Source: Perkinsus chesapeaki ATCC PRA-425 (Eukaryota > Protista > Perkinsozoa). From it: 64,000 nucleotides of DNA. The stretch lies in the NCBI GenBank assembly GCA_013115145.1, contig JAAPAO010000086.1, positions 1 through 64,000 on the forward strand, given 5' to 3'. Each line of letters starts with the position of its first letter. Position 1 is the stretch's first letter. Both the position numbers and the translations under genes were made by a program. Shown one piece after another: positions 26,757 through 39,571 of the stretch. A model generated the notes under the pieces. That model was not told the origin of the DNA. It made no database searches and saw only the letters and a program-made list of their open reading frames with translations.

Positions 26757-29237
26757 ATGAGCATAAGATTCGTACTGAAGTTGAGCTATAAAGGAGAGTG
26801 TGTTAGAGTTAGACCAGAGCCGCAATTCTGCAACAGATATGGTCACATATTAGAGTAAGTAGGCCGCCGCCAGCATATCCCCTCGGATGGTCATCATTCT
26901 CAGTTATATCCGAGAGACCTGGCCAGAGTTATCTTCAACAGGCACAGAGAGGTCGTTTGGGGTATATTACTATGATGAGGCCGGTGACCAGTGTACCCTA
27001 AATGAAAGGACCTTTCCGGACTGCCTAATGCTGCTGCAAGAGCGCAACGCTTATAAGGACTCCGAGGAGCTTCCAGTGCTCAAACTAACTATCAAACCGC
27101 TACCGGAAGTCGAGACATCTCCGAGGCCTGTACCGGTTATGGTTGAGGCATCGAGGAGACTAGAAGAGAAGATCCAGACTAAGACTCACCTGGGATGCCC
27201 AAAGCGAACATCAGGGAAGCTCGCTGTTCACCGTGGATTCATATGTGATGGATGTGAGATGGACCCTCTTGTTGGGGACAGGTAGGCTGGGTGACAGTTG
27301 GAGTGATATAAGGGCGGTAATAGATACAAATGCAACTACTGTGACGACTTTGACTACTGTTCAAAGTGCTACGAGAGGAGGCTCATCCTTGGCCACAACC
27401 CTTTTCACGCCTTCACCTGTTATAAGATGCCCCGCCCTCCCACCAAGGCTCTTAAGTTACTATCAACCAGCTCAGATAAGGATACTATGACTTTGCCTAG
27501 CAAGCTCGAAGAGAAGTCTGTTGGTGATGCCCCAGTGGCCCCCAAAACCAAGTCTGTTGGTACCCTCCCCGAGCCCAGCCTTACCCGTGATGAAAGTGTA
27601 CAGTGGGAAAGCGAAAGGCATTGCACGGTTGCTGGGCCATGGGGCAGCTTGGATATATTCTCTGATGAACCTATTCAAGGTAGTTCACAGAACCTGGCCG
27701 CTCGAGTGGCCAAGGCTTGCACTGCGGCCTCTGAGGCCATGGGACGGCCGGCAAGGGAGGACTTGGAGACTGCTGACAGCTTTGCTGTGGCAGCTGGGAT
27801 ACATTTGGGGATTCAATGTGATCTATGTGGCGAACTGCCTATAGTCGGTCCAAGGTAATAGAGGGATCTAACTGGAATGCCTTCTCTAACGTTGATATCT
27901 GCAACTTCTTTAAAGGCTTTCGAGTGTCTTTAGATGAACACTCGGATGCGGCAGTCATTAGTCTACGCATGTTGGGAGGCTATCCGTAGGAATAACGATT
28001 CAACTCTAACTATTTGGGAGGGGAGGCTTGCAACAACTCAAAATCCTCATCTGTGGATGTCCGTACTGTCAAGCACTATGGAGCGTCAGTAGAGCTACAC
28101 AGAAAACTCCTAGAAACTTACTATCAGCATGTGGTCTTGTATGTAGGACTATTAAGGCCGGGAGGGGTAGCGTCATCGTCAGGTTCAAATGTAGGAAGTG
28201 CAAAGACTACGATTTATGCCAGAAGTGCTTTGACCTAGAAAACCCATCCAAGGCCATCCACGATCACCCTAAGTCCTCGTTCCGCACCCTCACACCACTC
28301 GATACGATACTACTACGTAAGGATCCTCATCGATGGGAGGCACCAGAGGCGGTCAAGGAAGCTCCAGTGGTGGACACTGAGGCTTGTGGTGGGCCTATGT
28401 TCGGGTCTCTGGCGTTGGTCAGCCCCGAGCCCGAGCCGGCTGCGTAAGTCGTTTGGCGATGGATGTTGTTCAGGCTTAGAGGCTCGTGGGGCAATATAAA
28501 GGGTTCCCATAAGCAACACGCTTCTTGTCCTCTTGTATTGGAGATGTTCTTATTAAAATTCAATTTTTGACAACGCTAGGAATATTTTCGGCCCTCCAAG
28601 GAATGCATGCAGTTCTGTGAGGCTGGATGAGCCTTTGCTCAGTCTGACCGAGGCAACAAGCACCATCGCATCCCCCCTGATGGAGCCTGAGAATGGCGGT
28701 GAGATAGAGATGGAAGATCCTCCAGCTGGAAGCACACATGATGATGACAGTAGTAGGAGCGCAATAGGGATGCGGTGAAGATCTCTCTCTGGTAGGCAGC
28801 GGCGGCGGCACAGAGTCAGATTCAATCCCGGAGAGCTGGATGGACTTGGGGGAATTGGAGGACAGTGACATTGAGGATGTCATGATCATTGGCACGCCGA
28901 GGTCCGATGATTTCCAGGTCGGCGGAGAGGTATGGTGCAGTTAATCCGACTCCTTCTGTAGGTCATTACGTCGATTGAAGAGGCAGTAGAGCAGGTAATC
29001 GATAGCAATAGCGTATAGTGGACACGAGTCGGTGTCAGGCACCAGATAGTCTGGTGACGGCAGAGGGACTCGCTGAGGCTCTTGTTCATCATGGAATTAT
29101 CGAAGATAGGAACAGGGCTGCGGCACTGCTTAGCCAAGTAGGACCTTCCGCCAAGTGTAGAGATAGTGTACTGGTTTTAGGTGTCGTCAAATGAAGAGCT
29201 TCGTAGCATGCTCTGTTCATTCCTCGGTACTGACTAA
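26757..29237 (+). CDS. p62/NBR1-like selective autophagy receptor: PB1 - ZZ - ZZ - LIR - helical C-terminus
   Basis: MSIRFVLKLSYKGE...FGVYYYDEAGDQCTL (PB1 with basic Lys and OPCA motif); HRGFICDGCEMDPLVGDR/YKCNYCDDFDYCSKC; HLGIQCDLCGELPIVGPR/FKCRKCKDYDLCQKC; ESDSIPESWMDLGELEDSD; end ALVHHGIIEDRNRAAALL. Confidence 0.8.
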
Positions 29238-29892
29238 GGCCTGCATTCTAGTTAGCAGCTCGCTCATCGGCTTGTGAGACGGGAGCTGCAATTCTGAAGT
29301 AGTTTGTTATTATATGATTTACCCATTTCCTTTTATCCGCAATATCTTGTCAATACTCATTACCATGCATTTTCATAGTGTAAATGTCAGTAGTCACCAC
29401 GGTGGCCCCAGAAGATGTCTACGGGCCAGGAGGAGGAGGGCTCGCGGCTTAGCATCAATACGACTAGTAACCTACTCTAGCGTTGTGTTGACCAAAGGCG
29501 GTTGTGTCGTCTTGTGCTACACTAGTACCGGTAGGATTGTCAGAAGCAACACTAGTACTGCTAGTGTTGTTTCTTCTAATCCATCCTCCTGGGTCCAGCT
29601 GCTAAGACCTAGGATGGAGAGTGATATCTCTTATGTCTTGTAGTGTTAACTTATCAATAATAAAGGATGCCTAGGAAAGTACATTGTGCTGCTGTTTTGT
29701 TGGTAAACCTAGAATACTGTGTGGGCATTCTTGTCGCCACAGCTAGTGTCGACGCCGTAGTCTATTTGGATATATTTCGTATACTTACATGTCAGACATT
29801 AATAAATAGTAAATACTCTTTATTTTTATATACATCTCCTGTGGGCAATACCTTTGGCTTTTCTTACTAAGACTTTGCTATTGTTCTCCCAA

Positions 29893-32284
29893 ATGGCCGT
29901 AGAGGACTTCTTCATCCTTAAGTTAGCCTTTGGCAAGGAGTCACTGCAGTGCCGGTGCCGATATGATACCATCTCCGACGTAAAACAGCTTCACAGGTCA
30001 ACCTCTCTCCTTTGCTGGGCCTTGCATATTTTACCCTTCAGGTTGATCAAAGAGGCGTGGCCGAATCTGAAGTCTACCCCCTACCGAGCGACGCTCCGTG
30101 GTGGTCAGGATCTGATCGACTGGCCTTCTAGTCACACCGCTGCGGCTCTAATAAAAGAAGGTCTGGCTGACTCGGTTTATGCTATGCCTCGACTGAAGCT
30201 CCGCGTCACGGCGTCACATAATACCTCGGGTAAAGTGGACAAGTCTAAGAAGCCATGGCCCATGGATGGCCACAAGCCAGCGGGCGTGCATCTTGCTTCT
30301 TGCTACCATTGCGACATGTTCCCAGTAGTTGGCCGTTGGTGAGTGCTGCCGTTGTTGGTTTCTCCTGCCGGTACTTCCCTTGTCAGTTTCGCATGCAGCA
30401 CCTGTCCCTCGATTGTGTTATGCTCCTGGTGCTTTGACGAGCATGATAAATCCCACACCATTACGCCCTTGGCTATGGCGTTCAATGGTCTTTGGGAGGG
30501 CAGCTTTATGGAAGATAACGCTAGAGATATGACGGATATTCTAAGAAATAGGCATAGGCCCTGGTCTGGGGATACTGTGAAGTAAGAAACATTCCACCCT
30601 ACTCATCGGCTTTGGACCTGCCGCCGGTTGAATTCACCACTCTTCACTAGAATTTTGGACACCATATATTCACCAGATGCTACCCGTCTAGTGTAACACA
30701 TCACCTGCAGCATCGGTCCAGCGCTATTTTACGACCTATGACACTTCAAAACTTGTATTTCATCATGGCTCGGGTGTTCCTTCGAGTCATAGTAAAGCGC
30801 TTCCCACAATGGGTTCCTAATAGGAACTTCCTATTACACCACCGGCCTTCCTCATCCGACATGTGAGTCTCTCGCCAAACGGCTTTATTGTTGCTTTTCT
30901 TATCAGCTTCAATGCGATCCAAGTTGGCGAGAATCCCCTACCCTCCATGGTCGCCGAGATCTTCTCCCGATCCGAGCCGCACCATGAAGAATTGACCAGA
31001 TTCTTCTGTGATGACGGCAAGTCTCTGCTATGCTATCGTCACTACTGCCATGCTTGCGGATGCTCAGCCTCGGTCATGCGCCAGTAAGCTGCCTCCTCTG
31101 GGCTTTTGGCAAGGTTGGCGTGTCAGGTTCCAGTGTGATGGTCGTGGGGACATCAATCTGTGCGACGCCTGTTACATTTTGTGGCGAGACGAGATTTCCA
31201 AGATATCATTCAAGTGCTCTAGGTTGTTCTTGCCTGGGTCATGGAACCCTCTGGGAGTCGGCCCATGGGAGCTGGTCCACTATGGTGTAGCTTGCGAGGA
31301 GTGTGGCATGTTCCCCATAAGAGGAAGAAGGTGAGAAAGGGGAAAACTCAAATAGGAGATTTAGTCGCCTTCTAACATTTTTCCGTTAGTGCGTATTCCT
31401 CAGAAAAACTAGCCCAGGCGTTGTAAGATTTGCGCGGGGATTCTCGCCTCCACTGGCGATTTGAAGAACTTTGTGTATTGGAGGCGGCGGTGTGACTCGT
31501 GATGCGCGCTTCACCAGTAGCATCTGTGTAAGGCAGGATGTCCACAATTCTGTCCCTTAATCAATCGAAACAAAGGATTCTGTAGGTCTTAGGGAGTTGC
31601 TCTACTTCTGTATGATTTTTCCGGCAAGTAGTTCCCACATCTGTGTTATCCAAAGCTGGGGATTATTCCGTGGTCGAATAAAAGCTGTATGTGACCTGTC
31701 TGCGGTGTGTAGGTACCATTGCAACTTCTGCACAGAGCATGATTTGTGTGAGAGCTGTTACAAGGAGACAGCTAATAGGAATCATCGGGAGACACATCTC
31801 TTCACTTTGGTGGTAAAACCGATTAAAGCATGGACGGTGCAGACGAGGAAGCCCAAAGGCATTTTGCTCAGCACTCTCAGATGTGAGAGGTGTGGCCAGG
31901 GGCCATCTGGTGGGGCGAGGTGAGTCGGAATGAACTGGATGTGATGTGATGCTTGTCATCAGATACACTATGGTGGCCTTGCCCGGGTCACGTTACTGTG
32001 GTCCGTGCTATAAAGAGGCTCTGCGGTTCGAAGCCCTCTGTATTCGAGGACCCTATAATAGAGGGTACGAGGCAGTTAATGAAGGTGCATTTAAAATACG
32101 ACAAGGAAAGCTCAAGGCTCTCGAAGGTGGGGCGGCTCTCATAGCCTTGGTAGATTCTTCGTGGCTTAGATTCCCTGGCAAGCACGTGGCTGATGGAGTC
32201 GATGGATCGCCAGTTGAAGGGCCAAGACCCCTTCCCGCTGCCATCGGAACATTCCCCAAACTCGGTATGACGTTTGAACGTTAG
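29893..32284 (+). CDS. PB1-like + four ZZ-type zinc finger protein, paralogue A
   Basis: MAVEDFFILKLAFGKES...IKEAWP; modules CYHCDMFPVVGRW, CHACG..CDGRGDINLCDAC, HYGVACEECGMFPIRGRR/YHCNFCTEHDLCESC, CERCGQGPSGGAR/..YCGPCY; ends LGMTFER. Confidence 0.8.
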
Positions 32285-32729
32285 GAGTCCCTTCATTTCA
32301 TGCTGTTTTAGGTTGTCTGGGCGGACGAGCCACCGAAAGCTCTGAAGCCGCATCACCGCACACTCCTCTATCCCCCGTCGCAGTAGCCTCTTGGCTTGCA
32401 CGTATTCATTCCATTTCAATTGACTCTGTCGTCCACTCGTTGTCTTTGATGTCTTTTGCTCTTTAAGACGTTTACTTGTCTCTTAAGTGTTGTATTGTTA
32501 CACGGCCAGCTGGGCTTCCTAAGGTTTGGCCTCTCCTACCAGCTTCATCGATACCCAGCAGTCACCCTCAGATGGCAGAGGTGCCCAGCGTTGAACTTGT
32601 CGCGCGCCCGGAAATCGGTTGTGGTCAAAGAACCTTGAAGAGGCGTGCAAACGAATGTAAGTGTGAGGATAATAGGTAAGCCTGCCAACGGTGATGATGA
32701 TATAAAATCCTAGTTGATGGTTTCAGTTA

Positions 32730-34835
32730 ATGCTGGACCTGTATTTGCTGAAGCTGAGCTACCAGGGAGAGTCCTTCCGCGTGAAGTTGAGAGTGGAGAA
32801 GTTCCGGACACTAGGGGACTTGGAGAAGTAGGGCGACACTTGTGAAGTGTGCTCTTAAGGCGTTTTTAGGATCGTGTACGCGGCTTGGCCATATCTTGAC
32901 AAGTCCAAGTACAAGATAGTCCTCCCGGACGGCGGCACCATAGATGATGCCTCTGCTAAGATGCGTGTAGCGACTAAGCTATCGGGAGATGCCAAAGATC
33001 CATCTGGTCACCTACCCGAGCTCAAACTCAAAGTGGTTCCATTGAAGGAGGTAGCCCCGATGGTACATCAACCAAAGAAGTTGGGAGAGCTTCGTGCCAT
33101 CGATGGCCATGACTTGGCGGTCACCTACTGGGAGTCATGTGACGGCTGCCAAATGTTCCCGCTTGTGGGGAAGTGGTAAGACCAGAGCGAATTGCTGATG
33201 AGTGAAGAAATGCCGCTCAGGTATATTTGCTACACGTGTGGGCAGGAAGATCTGTGCTTCGCTTGTCGTCAAGGCCACTCAAAGAGCCATAAGGTCATTC
33301 AGTACAGTCCGTCATCGAATGGTATGTGGGATAATGACAACGTTGTTGAGAACGAGCACAAAAGGGTGTTCAAGCTGAAGGTATTGGGGGCCCCCTGCCC
33401 AAAGCCTAAAGAGTAAGGTCTATATTCTACCAAGTGCCAGTGTGCTCGTCAGCTTTGAAGAGATACAGAAGAGACAGGCATCATTACCTCCTATGGTGAC
33501 TCGGACCTTCGCTTTAGACGAGATACCGGACGGCATCCCTGATGTTGCCTGCTACCGTGATGGAGGCAAAGCCATTTACTTTGAGATGTTCTGCCACGGA
33601 TGCGGCACCGGAGCTCAGGTCGCCAAGAGGTAGGAGAAGAATCGCTATCTTTAATGAGGAAAAATATGTTCAGGTTCAAGATGGACGGGCGTGATGATAT
33701 TAACCTTTGTGAAACCTGCTATCTCCTCTATAAGGACAGTGTCCTCTCGTCAGCATACAAGTGTTGTAGGGTGTGGCAGCCTGGTAGGGTGGGACGAGGT
33801 GACGATGGTAAGCCCTTTCTGGCTACCCATTATTCCACTACCTGCTCTGAATGTGAAGAGTCCCCTATTGTAGGACGCAGGTAACCTGGTTACGGCTTCA
33901 CCTCTCCGCCATTGGTGCCTTCATAGGTACACCTGCCTTGTCTGTAGTAATTTCGACCTGTGCTCGGAGTGCTATCGAAGTAGAGCCCAAACCTCTCACA
34001 GGCAGGCTCATGCATTTGGTCTTGTGGCTAAGCCGGTGCCTTTGTGGTCATTGAAGATTGCTAAACCTCGCGGTGTACGTGTTGAGGAATTTAAGTGCAG
34101 TCGATGTGGAAGTCACCCTGACGGCGGAGCGAAGTGAGTTTTGTTTCCGCGTTTTGCGCGCTCTCACATCATCTCAGATATCGGATGAAATTTGGTCCGC
34201 CCGACAGTCGGGATGCCCTCTATTGTGAGCCGTGCTATAAGAAGATGCTTCAGAGGGAGGCTTTGGAGCTCCGAGCTCCTATGGATGCCAGAAGGAGGAG
34301 CATTACACCCTGGAGTCATTCGGCTAGGGCTAGAAGCCGCACCCTGATTTTAGGATTGAAAGGTAGCTCTATTCGTTTAAGAGAGCTATCGCTTAGTGGT
34401 AGGGTCCCTAGCTTTCCGCCTTAACGCCCGACCACGCATGATTGAACTGATAAGGCAGATAGCCCGGGAGACGGGACAGCTGCTCGATATTGACAGCGAT
34501 GATTCGGACTCGGTAAGGTCTTTTGAGGGGAATCAAAGTACAAGTCTTTTACAGTTGGAGTGGGCAGTTGAACCTCCAAAGGAGCTCAAGTCTGATGACA
34601 TTATCGACCAAGGCCCTAATAGGTGATGACCAAGAGTGCTTCAATCCAGGCTCCATATTGTTTCGTATCACTTTCATTGATTACCTTAAACCTGGCATTT
34701 CTTACTTTCACAGTCGAGCCACGATTTTCTTGTACACTTTAGCTTATTGCGTTTGTGTTAGAGCAGGCTATTGCATCTAGAGTATTATGCAGGCCCATGG
34801 GGATGCACTTCTCGAGAGCCAGAAAGCTTCACTAG
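32730..34835 (+). CDS. PB1-like + four ZZ-type zinc finger protein, paralogue B (stop at 34626, or 34835 if a last exon is spliced on)
   Basis: MLDLYLLKLSYQGES...VYAAWP; CDGCQMFPLVGKW/YICYTCGQEDLCFAC, CHGCG..MDGRDDINLCETC, HYSTTCSECEESPIVGRR/YTCLVCSNFDLCSEC, CSRCGSHPDGGAK/..YCEPCY. Confidence 0.8.
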
Positions 34836-35091
34836 GGCTCAGATGGAAGAGAAGGAAGCTTTGGGGAAAATATGTTCTTAACTGAAATAAGATACGTCAA
34901 GTTGGTTTCATGCTCCTCGATTACACCCTGGTTCCATGGCTCTCCTTAGCACTGCCAACACACAGACCATCTTTGTGTGTTCATCGCTAGTCGGAGGAGA
35001 CAGTCGGACCGTTGCACCCTTAAAGTTTGTCTGGCTATTTCGCTGCTACAGTCTGTACCTTGTCAGTATTTGGTCCTTGCTCTTGCCCTCC

Positions 35092-36993
35092 ATGTACGCC
35101 GACTTGTTCTTCATACTTAAGTTGAGGTATGCTGGAGAGTCACTACGGAGTCGATGCCCCTTTAGTAGCATCACTACTATTGCCGATATCTACAGGTAGC
35201 TATTTCATACCGACAATTCCGTACAGTTTTGACTATTAGTCTTATCGAAGAGGCTTGGCCAGCGCTGAAGACTGCCAAGTACACAGTACGGGTGCATGAG
35301 GGCAGGGACCTTGCCACCTACGACAAGAACGCCGCCACTTCCGCGTTGGTGAACAGCGACTGTGGTGTGATGGTGGCTGGCTCACCGAGGGAAGTGCGCA
35401 TGGACATTCAAGGTGGCCCTGATGTCACACCAATCAAGAACCGATCTTCGAGCCCTCCGAAGCCTATGGACGGTCATGAGGTCGCCGTGCTTCATCTGAA
35501 CACATGTCATCACTGTGGTATGGGCCCCATTATCGGGAGATGGTATGAAATAGGGTTTGGACCGCCGCTGCACAAAATCTGTCTCCTTTTGTCAGTTACA
35601 AATGTTCCACTTGCTCCGACTTTACCTTCTGTTCCCGTTGTTATGGCCGCCACGATCCAAGCCACACTCTCACTGTGGTCAGTACAGCTCTCGACGGCAT
35701 GTGGGACAGTCGTGAGGTTGTCGCTGTGTGCAAGGACTTCCTCAATCTGGTTCGCAATATGGGGGAGCCATGGCCTGGCGATCTCGTTAAGTAAGTCCCC
35801 CTTTCTCGTCCGTCCTGATGCCTACCTCAGGATCAAGGACCTCCAGCTGCCCGATCAAAACGTGCCCCTTATGATAGGGGAGACGTTCCCGAAGGCTGAC
35901 CCTCCTTCCAGAGAGGTGCAGCCTGGCCTGTGTAAAGATGGCTGCTCCTTTATAAGCTACAGGATATTCTGTCATTGCTGCAGCAGTGCTGTCAGTAGAG
36001 CCAGACAGTACTACCCACCACGGTCTGCTCCCTATGCCATCCTGTCCCCTAGGTTGCGTTGTGACGGTCGAGCTGACATCAACCTCTGTGATTCCTGTTA
36101 TCTCACTCATCGCACCGTGGCATTGAAACTTGCTAACAAATGCTCGAGGATCGTCACACCATCGCTTTGGAATGATGGCAATGACGAGGCGGTTGAACTG
36201 GTGCACTATGGCTCTACCTGTGATGAGTGTGGGGTGTCCCCTATTGTGGGCCGGAGGTGAGGCTACTGCGTACATGATGAAAAGGAGACAGTTTTTGTGT
36301 CGTGGTATCGGTAGGTACAAGTGCAACTACTGTGCCGAGTACGAGCTATGCAATAGATGCTTCAAAGAGCCCGCCAACAAACAACATCGATTGGAGCATC
36401 TCTTCACTCTCATAGTCAGACCGGCCAAGCTTTGGACGGTGCACACGAAGGACCAGACTGGAACCCTCTTCAGTGAGATGCCCTGTGAGATGTGCGGCAT
36501 CCATCCTCCGGGCGGGGCCAGGTAAAGTCATTGTCGTTTGGCCGTCGCCATCAGTGCCTTTCTGTGTAGGTATACCATTAAGTGCGATTGCAAGGCCCAG
36601 ATGTGCTATGATTGCTATAAGGATGATTTACAAGGGCAAGCGGTCCTGTTGCGTGGGGAATTCTTCGACTACCCGAACCCGGTGAGCATGCAGGCCAGCA
36701 TGGACCGAGAAAGGCAGCGACTCATTTTAAAAAGTAACGTAGGAAATTAGGGCACTTTCGTCAGTGGCTTTTTAGACTCCTTTGCCTCCAACTTGCCTAT
36801 TGGTCTGATGATGGACTCGACTAAGGGGAAGAGTAATAAAGAAGGGGCTCCCAAAGGAAGGGTAGTGAGCGTCTGCGTGCTACGGTAGTAGGGATTTACG
36901 GTACAGGTCATTTGGGCTGATGAGATGCCCCGTGAAGTTAAACCTCACCATAGGATTGTTCGGGCAAGCTGTGGGTGTGGTGGCCATCACTAG
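35092..36993 (+). CDS. PB1-like + four ZZ-type zinc finger protein, paralogue C (3' end approximate)
   Basis: MYADLFFILKLRYAGES...IEEAWP; CHHCGMGPIIGRW/YKCSTCSDFTFCSRC, CHCCS..CDGRADINLCDSC, HYGSTCDECGVSPIVGRR/YKCNYCAEYELCNRC, CEMCGIHPPGGAR/..MCYDCY; downstream exon VQVIWADEMPREVK matches paralogue B. Confidence 0.78.
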
Positions 36994-37324
36994 GATCATT
37001 CATTAATAGCCGTAATGCAGTGTTATGGCCGAATAGGCCATGGTACGTACTAGCTCCTCGCTTCTTCTTCTTATTGAGTAGCTTGAAGCGTTAACGATTT
37101 TGCACTGGAGATGAGTAGTAGCATATTGCACTTACACAATGATTTCAGTTCTCCTAATGTTTCAATTAGCCTCTCTTTTGTTGGGTTACTAATACTTGGT
37201 CGATCGACGCTGGTGGGAGTGACCGCGCGCCACGCTATTCCTTCAGTGCCCCCTTGCTTATACCGTACTTGCCCTTATCACCATTCATCCTCGTCGCTCA
37301 ATAAAGCAGGCAAGCAGCGTGAGA

Positions 37325-39171
37325 ATGGAGTGGGCCTATGGCCTCCTGGCCTCCATCACTGCCTTTACTCTAACCTTCCTAGTCTATAATGTCTACTTCG
37401 TCATGGACCATAGACAGCAGGTCTTAGGTAGTGGGGTGTGGTGGGCATACTAGTGGGACTTTGGACGCAATTAGATTGTCACTTCTCCCGTAGTGTTGTA
37501 GAACTATACGTACGACCACTGAGGCCAGGGTCAGGGTTTTCGAATGGTATGAGGTTGGTGTCGAAACTCGTTGGCAGAGTCACACTGGAGTGGGTACAAC
37601 CAGTTGCTCACAGTATGGCATTATAGTAGATATGGTACGGCTAACCAATCACTATATAGTTGAAGAATAGATCTCAAAGAGCTCGCAACTGGTGCTTCTC
37701 TCAAGGGTATGACTGTATTATTATCGCTCAGCAGTGCAATGGGTGACTTGACAGCGGGAAATATGCCTACCGTGGTAGGAAGCTCTCCAAAGCGGCGACC
37801 TTAGCCTCATTTTTCCTCTTATTGACACCTTCTGAGAGCCGCTTAGCCCGCGTCTATCTAGCCTCCAATTCAGGCGGTACTGCAGGGGTGTGGGGGCTTC
37901 GGGAGTGGATGCTGGCAATGGCGTTTGATGTACCATGGCTGCTATGTTTAATCTGTTACCTTCGGTAAGCCAGCCCAGCTGCTCTCAACTTGGTAGTGCC
38001 AAGGCTTCTCTCTGTAGTGTATTGATGACTAAGCCTGGTAAGGTGCCCAGAAGGTGGACGGAATACGTCACTAAGAACTCTATACGGGTCAGCGTCACCG
38101 AGCAGTCCACATTCCAAGTGGGTGCTTGAATCCTTCCTACTGCTCTCACCAGTCCTTATCAGCCTCGAGCGTCATCTATTTGTGGTGCCTGTATGCGACA
38201 TAGGCCTGAGAGAGCCCATCACTGCACTGTGTGTGGAGAGTGTGTCCTCCGCCATGATCATCATGATTGAGTCACTGGTAGGGCCTTTTCGGAAGCGCTG
38301 CGCTTACTCCCTAGAAAAATGTCGACTATCCATTACTCCTCCTCAGCTCACTTTCAATCTTCATCGGTTCGTCACGGGAAGTACTCACTAGTGCTTTGGT
38401 CCGAAAATTTGCCAGCTTCGCGCGGAGTTCTCGGAAAAATCTTCCCCTTACAATCCGATAATATGCGCATCTTTCAGCTAGTTGCCTTGATTCAGGTGCT
38501 TGCATTGGGTTCCGCAACCACAAGTTCTACGTACTATTCCTCTTCTACGGAGCCCTAGCCTCAACAGTCTTCCTCTTGCTCATCGTACCGCATCTCTCCA
38601 TTCGAGTAGGAAGTATCAGAAAGTCCTTGTTGGCACCAATCCTGTAGATGATGTCCTCTGGTCCACAGGCCAGCTTCCTACCACTGTCGAGTGCAGCGTG
38701 TAGGACCATCGAGGCTTCCATAGCTATGGTTGCAGTAAGGACGATATCATCCCAGTCTCTCAGGCAGCCTGCTTTATCAGTTCCTAGCACTCCCTTACTT
38801 CTACTTCAATCTCCCTCTACAGTGCTCTCAGCTGTGCCGTAACGTCACGGCTCACGAGGCCGAATATGTCGCCACTAATCCTTATGATCTCGGCACTAGG
38901 GTGGCCAATGCGGCAGCTGTAACACCGGGAGGCCACGTGAGGCGGGACTCGGTTGCTTCAGGTTTTTGGGACGAGCTTTGGTCCGATGTTCTTGTACTGG
39001 TTGCTGCCAGTGGACCCTTGTCGTCCTGAGAGCGATGGTCTCTTCTATCCAGTAGCATCGAGCCCGGGGATGTCCACAGCTTGCTCGGTGGAGGATGGTG
39101 GTGGTATGGAGCATTCAATCCAGGCTCTATTAGGGAGAGCTCGTGGAGATACTAAACACATAGATAGGTAG
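37325..39171 (+). pseudogene. DHHC-type palmitoyltransferase with in-frame TGA at the catalytic motif (pseudogene or recoded)
   Basis: TM segments, MTKPGKVP, CGACMRHRPERAHHCTVCGECVLRHDHHD-TGA, then ACIGFRNHKFYVLFLFY, NVTAHE, NPYDLG and FG...LYWLLPV. All family hallmarks are present except DHHC itself. Confidence 0.7.
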
Positions 39172-39571
39172 GCGAGGAGAAACATGAGACCGATAGAACC
39201 ACTTTACTCCACCGTCATCGCTCACCGACGACTTTTGGCAGCCCGATTGCGACAGGCTGCTGCCAGGTGCTTCGGTGGCTTCATGACCGCTTCTAGGTTA
39301 CTGGATCCGGACATGAAACACTTGATTACGAGCGGTAAAAGGAACTCTCTAGCTGCCATCGAGTTCCATGAGGATGCTGCTGACGAAACCACTCGACTGT
39401 GAGCTCCTACATGCTCTCTTCACCTGCATCCCCCTTCCGCAGAGCCCCACCATCAAGAAGCTCCTCGTACTGCTCGACTTCATGCATACTGTGAGTGTTA
39501 CTGTCATGTGGTTACTGTCATAAGTGCTGTCTTTACCATTATTTGATTTGCGTTGTCTAACCATCACCGTT

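Follow-up and report, generated by a model that had tools for sequence, protein, structure and literature searches.

A Tandem Array of PB1-ZZ Genes in Perkinsus chesapeaki Comprising One Two-Faced PB1 Domain and Three Paralogues That Appear to Keep Only the Basic Face

The window analyzed here, positions 1-64000 of contig JAAPAO010000086.1 of Perkinsus chesapeaki (64,000 nucleotides, with window coordinates identical to record coordinates), contained four homologous genes that were arranged head to tail on the + strand and are referred to as gene 1 and paralogues A, B, and C. Perkinsus species are alveolate parasites of molluscs and, as pathogens, are important in clams and oysters. The N-terminal domain of gene 1 is a genuine PB1 domain of type AB, which displays both a basic face with the beta1 lysine and an acidic face that aligns with the OPCA motif. 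The N-domains of paralogues A, B, and C, as read from their aligned sequences, are base-only, and they are counted as type B because the basic face was kept and the acidic face was lost. This split in polarity was conserved across Perkinsus species, and the four domains share a common descent. The polarity of a PB1 domain (A, B, or AB) decides whether a protein can polymerize or only cap, and it is central to the building of p62 bodies in animals.

The PB1 Domain of Gene 1

The N-terminus of gene 1 read M-S-I-R-F-V-L-K8-L-S-Y from position 26757, and the acidic loop Y-Y-D-E-A-G-D-Q-C followed from position 26968. An earlier note on this DNA had described gene 1 as two-faced and its paralogues as lysine-only, and every motif that it quoted was found on the + strand at the place where it had been put. 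The AlphaFold2 model of the gene 1 domain (predicted local distance difference test, pLDDT, 83.6; predicted template modeling score, pTM, 0.73) showed the secondary structure order b1-b2-a1-b3-b4-a2-b5, or bbabbab, with strands (E) and helices (H) at E6-11, E14-18, H28-38, E51-56, E62-64, H70-82, and E91-98. The best Foldseek matches of this model were PB1 structures, including PKCzeta-p62, NBR1 (target TM 0.82), AtNBR1, Par6, and p40/p67phox.

Sequence comparisons pointed in the same direction. Residues 1-110 of gene 1 shared 36% identity with PMAR011080 of P. marinus (P0025; BLASTP E=2e-19), and the N-terminus of the latter exceeded the gathering score of Pfam PB1 (27.9 vs 23.6 bits). A large phmmer search with exon 2 of gene 1, which gave 30 matches in all, many of them via half a ZZ finger, recovered proteins with PB1 and ZZ domains from dinoflagellates and oomycetes, among them a full Aphanomyces NBR1. 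When 13 family domains of 11 proteins were aligned, residues Y55, D57, G60, D61, and D72 were invariant, and the family profile built from this alignment (A2) matched the PB1 domains of PKCiota (E=2.9e-4) and of PKCzeta and AtNBR1 (E=1.6e-3) in the PDB, with weaker matches to Cdc24, MEK5, and TFG. K8 of gene 1, which was kept in three Perkinsus species, aligned with the canonical beta1 lysine of PKCiota, PKCzeta, and AtNBR1 (K11), whereas the acidic residues D57, D61, and D72 aligned with D60, D64, and D73 of AtNBR1. Gene 1 thus carries a type-AB PB1 domain, because Lys8 and the acidic loop align with the canonical lysine and OPCA motif of known PB1 domains, the predicted fold is that of a PB1 domain, and its Foldseek matches are PB1 structures. 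The two-faced character claimed for gene 1 was therefore borne out, with the qualification that the OPCA core has an alanine in the middle.

Conservation of the Polarity Split across Perkinsus

The N-domains were compared exon by exon among P. chesapeaki, P. marinus, and P. olseni. The 12 copies compared comprised gene 1 from three species, seven copies of the paralogues (A and B from two species each and C from three), and a fifth paralogue, designated X, from P. marinus and P. olseni. As regards the register of the loops, the MAFFT alignment (A3) placed a five-residue gap in the loop of gene 1; the ungapped register was preferred and was supported by the AlphaFold2 secondary structures. The OPCA-equivalent loops of gene 1 and C were located between beta3 and beta4/alpha2 in both models, so that the loops called equivalent in the earlier note do occupy the same place.

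The beta1 position (position 0) was occupied by lysine in gene 1 and in all seven copies of A, B, and C, and by arginine in X. Position +9 was arginine in gene 1, B, C, and X and glutamine in A, and position +11 was arginine in gene 1 and X and arginine or lysine in A, B, and C. Positions 0 and +11 were therefore basic in 12/12 copies across the three species, whereas the acidic loop was retained in gene 1 alone. In gene 1, K8 and the motif YYDEAGD-x-CTLNERT were kept in all three species, and the acidic loop was nearly invariant. None of the acidic residues in the A, B, and C loops was shared between species. The net charge of the loop window, defined as 7 to 35 residues past the tryptophan of the conserved WP motif, was -4 to -5 in gene 1 and 0 to +3 in six of the seven A/B/C copies, the exception being C of P. 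olseni (-2); in X, it was -6 to -7. The loop of B, as quoted in the earlier note, is present but was cut short: in P. chesapeaki, it continues with I-D-D-A-S, which places aspartates (D, D, D) within and beyond the loop, and P. marinus B has N, G, and Q at these places. Taken together, the alignments indicate two faces for gene 1 and a basic face only for A, B, and C.

The order of the genes was also comparable between species. The P. marinus array (locus L001) consisted of gene 1, X, A, B, and C, and in P. olseni gene 1 was followed by X on contig L004, with C on other contigs; no orthologues of A or B were found on P. olseni contigs L003 and L005. Paralogue X was located directly after gene 1 (L001:2422-2735 in P. 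marinus and L004:3244-3558 in P. olseni). It has arginine in place of the beta1 lysine, no canonical OPCA core, and, past beta3, a strongly acidic stretch in the alpha2 region. In the P. chesapeaki window, gene 1 and A are only approximately 655 base pairs apart, and X is missing from this gap. A second C-type N-domain with in-frame stops was observed in P. olseni (JABANN010000224.1, L005:3422-3771) approximately 6 kb upstream of the intact C, and it is probably a pseudogene.

Descent of the Paralogue N-Domains

The N-domains of gene 1 and C were related by BLASTP over beta1 to alpha1 (E=5e-7), and an hhalign comparison of gene 1 with the paralogue N-domain covered the whole domain (E=0.0018), although with a probability of only 15%. 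The paralogue groups share only 18-38% identity. In all four genes, the N-domain precedes the first ZZ finger and is interrupted by an intron that is located exactly 24 codons past the lysine codon, in phase 2. Because this intron occupies an identical codon and phase in each gene, the descent of the four N-domains from one ancestor is well supported by gene structure and sequence. The AlphaFold2 model of the C domain, the one paralogue that was folded, was a beta-grasp (pLDDT 76.9). The N-domains of A, B, and C are hence treated as divergent, PB1-derived beta-grasp domains, which are called PB1 on the basis of their homology to gene 1. Word searches with the paralogues, which are of limited sensitivity, yielded Perkinsus matches only, and as far as such searches can see, the paralogues constitute a genus-restricted family.

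The intron in the N-domain of A is 45 nucleotides long, in frame, and free of stops, with a weak donor (GTCAAC), and its retention would add 15 residues to helix alpha1. Its counterpart in P. marinus contains a stop and therefore must be spliced.

Domain Architecture outside the N-Domains

The remainder of gene 1 followed the order of p62-type proteins, in that the PB1 domain precedes two ZZ fingers (Pfam E=8.5e-23), an acidic W-x-x-L motif, and a helical, UBA-like tail. The acidic motif, W-M-D-L, was conserved among the gene 1 orthologues of the three species. The tail aligned loosely with true UBA tails, and Pfam UBA gave no match to gene 1. The FW domain (N_BRCA1_IG, PF16158) was absent by Pfam from gene 1 of P. 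chesapeaki (P0035) and P. olseni (P0034) and was present in the Aphanomyces relative P0030. Because it lacks the FW domain, gene 1, as far as Pfam can tell, is not NBR1 in the strict sense. The protein is most likely a putative receptor or scaffold of the selective-autophagy type that is able to associate head to tail.

Paralogues A, B, and C each encode four ZZ-like fingers. A C-terminal motif, W-A-(D/V)-E-x-P-(R/K)-x-(V/L)-K, was common to the three (32300-32365, 34546-34614, and 36900-36990, respectively) and was lacking in gene 1; it differs from the canonical W-x-x-L motif for ATG8.

Proposed Mechanism and Alternative Explanations

The preferred, although tentative, explanation is that of a Perkinsus-specific tandem family derived from a single p62/NBR1-like PB1-ZZ ancestor, in which gene 1 is a two-faced hub and A, B, and C dock by their basic face only and end the chain. 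Gene 1, which keeps the AB PB1 domain, both ZZ fingers, the W-x-x-L motif, and the helical tail, would act as a head-to-tail receptor or scaffold, for which filaments and short oligomers or pairs are considered equally likely. In A, B, and C, the basic face (beta1 lysine and beta2 arginine or lysine) would have been kept, and the acidic one, with OPCA, would have been lost. Provided that their N-domains still make PB1-type contacts, docking would be possible only on the acidic face of a PB1 domain that bears OPCA, as follows from PB1 logic (PMC7051960; PMC6978347), and the chain would end there because a base-only domain presents no acidic surface to a further subunit. The statement in the earlier note that a lysine-only domain binds but cannot extend a chain is in accordance with this logic. 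The adjoining gene 1 is the obvious candidate partner, to which docking would bring the four ZZ-like fingers of A, B, or C. Such a relation between hub and adaptors is favored by the distribution of the other parts, namely W-M-D-L and the helical tail in gene 1 alone, and four ZZ-like fingers with another C-terminal motif in A, B, and C. Type-A NBR1 caps and shortens p62 filaments (PMC6978347), and it is plausible that A, B, and C may cap filaments of gene 1 or limit condensate size, as had been proposed. Polymerization of gene 1, binding by A, B, and C, partner choice, capping, any limit on condensates, and the autophagy link are all predictions.

Several observations weigh against this explanation, beginning with the identity of the domains. 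Pfam PB1 (PF00564) gave no match to gene 1 even at E<=10, and none to the paralogues when they were searched as single exons or, in the case of C, as the full protein, also at E<=10. No PB1 domain was found in the PDB with the paralogue profile (A4), and the hhalign probability for the comparison of gene 1 with the paralogues was only 15%. For C, the structure scores of the model were tied among UBX (Z 9.3), Par6 PB1 (Z 8.9), and NBR1 PB1 (Z 8.6), and its language-model and structure look-alikes were ubiquitin-like and UBX clusters, not PB1. The designation of A, B, and C as lysine-only PB1 domains thus stands in part: the lysine is kept and the acidic loop is not conserved, but profiles from Pfam and the PDB make no PB1 call. 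Such results would be expected if the paralogue N-domains were degenerate beta-grasp domains without PB1-PB1 contacts, the lysine and arginine of which serve, for example, to contact the ZZ fingers within the same protein or to bind an acidic non-PB1 ligand. The fit of the fold to UBX and ubiquitin-like domains as well as to PB1 is in line with this alternative, as is the arginine that replaces the lysine in X of P. marinus and P. olseni. On the other hand, the basic residues at canonical PB1 positions are among the few that are invariant at 18-38% identity, and a function is expected for them because functionless surface residues would not stay fixed. This alternative is considered unlikely, albeit the least unlikely of the three discussed here.

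The choice of partner and the form of assembly are likewise subject to doubt. Other OPCA-bearing PB1-ZZ-ZZ proteins of type AB exist in Perkinsus: PMAR011080 and PMAR011078 (P0025/P0045) are near-identical p62-like genes on one P. marinus contig elsewhere in the genome, with a full D-D-E-G-D core and the beta1 lysine, and they could be alternative partners for any base-only PB1 domain. A, B, and C may accordingly use their basic face on a PB1 protein of this type rather than on gene 1, in which case the neighborhood would reflect tandem duplication only; on P. olseni contig L005, C is more than 5 kb from any copy of A or B. No RNA runs holding the stretch were found, and a single 167-base contig within exon 2 of C was uninformative on splicing and expression. 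However, the arrays of P. chesapeaki and P. marinus both have gene 1 ahead of the paralogues, in P. olseni it precedes X, and the acidic loop of gene 1 is nearly invariant across the genus. A partner other than gene 1 is considered improbable. As for the assembly, both the tandem arginine of beta2 (the "double arginine finger") and the central aspartate of OPCA have been tied to filament formation in PB1 domains (Jakobi et al., 2020; PMC6978347), and gene 1 departs from the filament formers at both places. The core D57-E58-A59-G60-D61 has the first and third acids of D-x-D/E-x-D/E and Ala59 as the middle one, and V16-R17 stands opposite R19-R20 of AtNBR1, with R17 and R19 present in gene 1. 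The filament-forming AB domains with tandem arginine include p62, AtNBR1, and TFG1, whereas PKCzeta, which is of type AB without tandem arginine, remains soluble (PMC6978347). Gene 1 may therefore form discrete front-to-back pairs, as in the pair of atypical protein kinase C (aPKC) and Par6, instead of capped filaments or condensates, and the best sequence matches of its family profile are indeed the aPKC PB1 domains. Nevertheless, gene 1 keeps one arginine of the pair as well as R19, together with three of the four interface acids of AtNBR1, and its p62-like architecture suggests a scaffolding role; a gene 1 that does not polymerize at all is regarded as slightly more improbable still than a different partner. 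Furthermore, the type-B PB1 domain of MEKK3 was not seen at the ends of p62 filaments (Jakobi et al., 2020; PMC6978347), which weighs against filament capping by A, B, and C.

Gene Array and Public Annotation

The locus was placed in P. chesapeaki by protein matches to P. marinus, P. olseni, and P. chesapeaki and by the exact gene 1 protein FOL47_010739; a fungal origin, which the short GT-AG introns had suggested, was thereby rejected. The features of the array are listed in Table 1. Orthologues of gene 1 are P0034 in P. olseni and P0004 in P. marinus. The splice models constructed here for gene 1 and C agreed with the database proteins P0035 and P0041. The GenBank record contains no gene calls between A and C, where paralogue B was found as an apparently intact eight-exon gene with clean, in-frame GT-AG introns of 40-48 nucleotides at every ZZ junction. 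The public model FOL47_010741 (P0041, 868 residues, window positions 35092-39237) fuses C to a downstream DHHC palmitoyltransferase and omits the conserved last exon of C (approximately 36900-36990), which encodes the tail W-A-D-E-M-P-R-E-V-K-P-H-H...C-G-C-G. The P. marinus orthologue of C, P0001 (515 residues), terminates in the same W-A-D-E-M-P-R... tail. The public annotation is thereby corrected in two respects, as B is absent from it and C is joined to the DHHC gene. Word-index searches did not retrieve database proteins for A or B, although A is annotated. The intron in the second ZZ finger of gene 1 is 328 nucleotides long (27855-28182), whereas the other introns checked in the array are 40-49 nucleotides. 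No literature on PB1, p62, or NBR1 proteins in Perkinsus was found, nor was a paper naming these proteins.

Table 1. Positions of the four genes and of their N-terminal domains in the window
Feature	Position	Strand	Evidence or remarks
Gene 1 (FOL47_010739, P0035), 561 residues, annotated	26757-29237	+	Identical database protein with its locus
Gene 1 PB1 domain, type AB	26757-27099	+	Splice sites, AlphaFold2, Foldseek, family profile
Gene 1 PB1 exon 1	26757-26854	+	
Gene 1 PB1 intron	26855-26903	+	
Gene 1 PB1 exon 2	from 26904	+	
Gene 1 Lys8 codon	26778-26780	+	
Gene 1 D57 codon	26974-26976	+	
Gene 1 D61 codon	26986-26988	+	
Gene 1 D72 codon	27019-27021	+	
Paralogue A, annotated, 505 residues; N-terminal beta-grasp/PB1-like domain and ~4 ZZ-like fingers	29893-32386	+	GenBank gene call, exon pieces, tblastn with P0001
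Paralogue A N-domain (FILKLAF)	29893-30213	+	
Paralogue A Lys10 codon	29920-29922	+	
Paralogue A N-domain intron, in frame	29997-30041	+	
Paralogue A loop YRATLRGGQDL	30082-30114	+	
Paralogue B, intact, without GenBank annotation	32730 to ~34623 (3' end approximate)	+	In-frame GT-AG introns, P. marinus orthologue at L001:7456
Paralogue B N-domain (YLLKLSY)	32730-33041	+	
Paralogue B Lys8 codon	32751-32753	+	
Paralogue B N-domain intron	32828-32869	+	
Paralogue B loop YKIVLPDGGTI	32910-32942	+	
Paralogue C, annotated as the front of an 868-residue fusion (P0041)	35092 to ~36993	+	P. marinus orthologue P0001 (515 residues)
Paralogue C N-domain (FILKLRY)	35092-35411	+	
Paralogue C Lys10 codon	35119-35121	+	
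Paralogue C N-domain intron	35196-35239	+	
Paralogue C loop YTVRVHEGRDL	35280-35312	+	

Comparison with Known PB1 Systems and Significance

Gene 1 appears to be built like p62/SQSTM1, the metazoan selective-autophagy receptor and scaffold, with the shared order of a type-AB PB1 domain, ZZ, an acidic W-x-x-L motif, and a short, helical C-terminus, and with UBA and ATG8 binding as putative, predicted functions. Other PB1 proteins dock on the PB1 domain of p62. In contrast to p62, gene 1 is an alveolate gene that contains two ZZ fingers instead of one, a UBA-like tail that is putative, a single arginine instead of R21-R22, and alanine at the central OPCA position. The NBR1 proteins, represented by AtNBR1 and P0030 of Aphanomyces, similarly combine an N-terminal PB1 domain with ZZ, and the type-AB PB1 domain of AtNBR1 aligns with gene 1 across the whole domain; unlike them, gene 1 is without FW / N_BRCA1_IG by Pfam. 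Mammalian NBR1 provides a one-faced PB1 domain that caps and shortens p62 filaments, but it belongs to the acid-only type A, in contrast to the Perkinsus paralogues, which appear base-only (type B). The pair of aPKC and Par6 (AB with B) resembles the proposed arrangement in that a one-faced basic partner sits on the OPCA face, and both the aPKC matches of the gene 1 profile and the Par6 score of the C model are consistent with this likeness. That pair is, however, a discrete heterodimer in cell polarity, and it lacks both ZZ fingers and a tandem arrangement of genes. The PB1 domain of MEKK3 is lysine-only and belongs to the class proposed for A, B, and C, and its absence from the ends of p62 filaments (Jakobi et al., 2020) cautions that capping by type-B domains is not to be assumed.

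These comparisons suggest a lineage-specific variation on the known PB1 polarity scheme, in which the observed split in polarity is confirmed and its interpretation is partly supported. Extended to the whole genus, one two-faced, p62-like hub and several one-faced (ZZ)4 adaptors would constitute a polarity-coded assembly, in which the adaptors end chains, deliver cargo recognized by ZZ, and set the size of polymers or condensates by stoichiometry; this would be the p62-NBR1 relation with reversed charge, evolved independently in an alveolate parasite. In this full form, the proposal is speculative and rather improbable. The conserved array of one AB p62-like gene and several apparently B-type (ZZ)4 genes nonetheless offers a simple model for selective-autophagy or quality-control assemblies in protists, and, if the proposal is true, it would represent an independent case of one-faced paralogues that regulate a two-faced scaffold.

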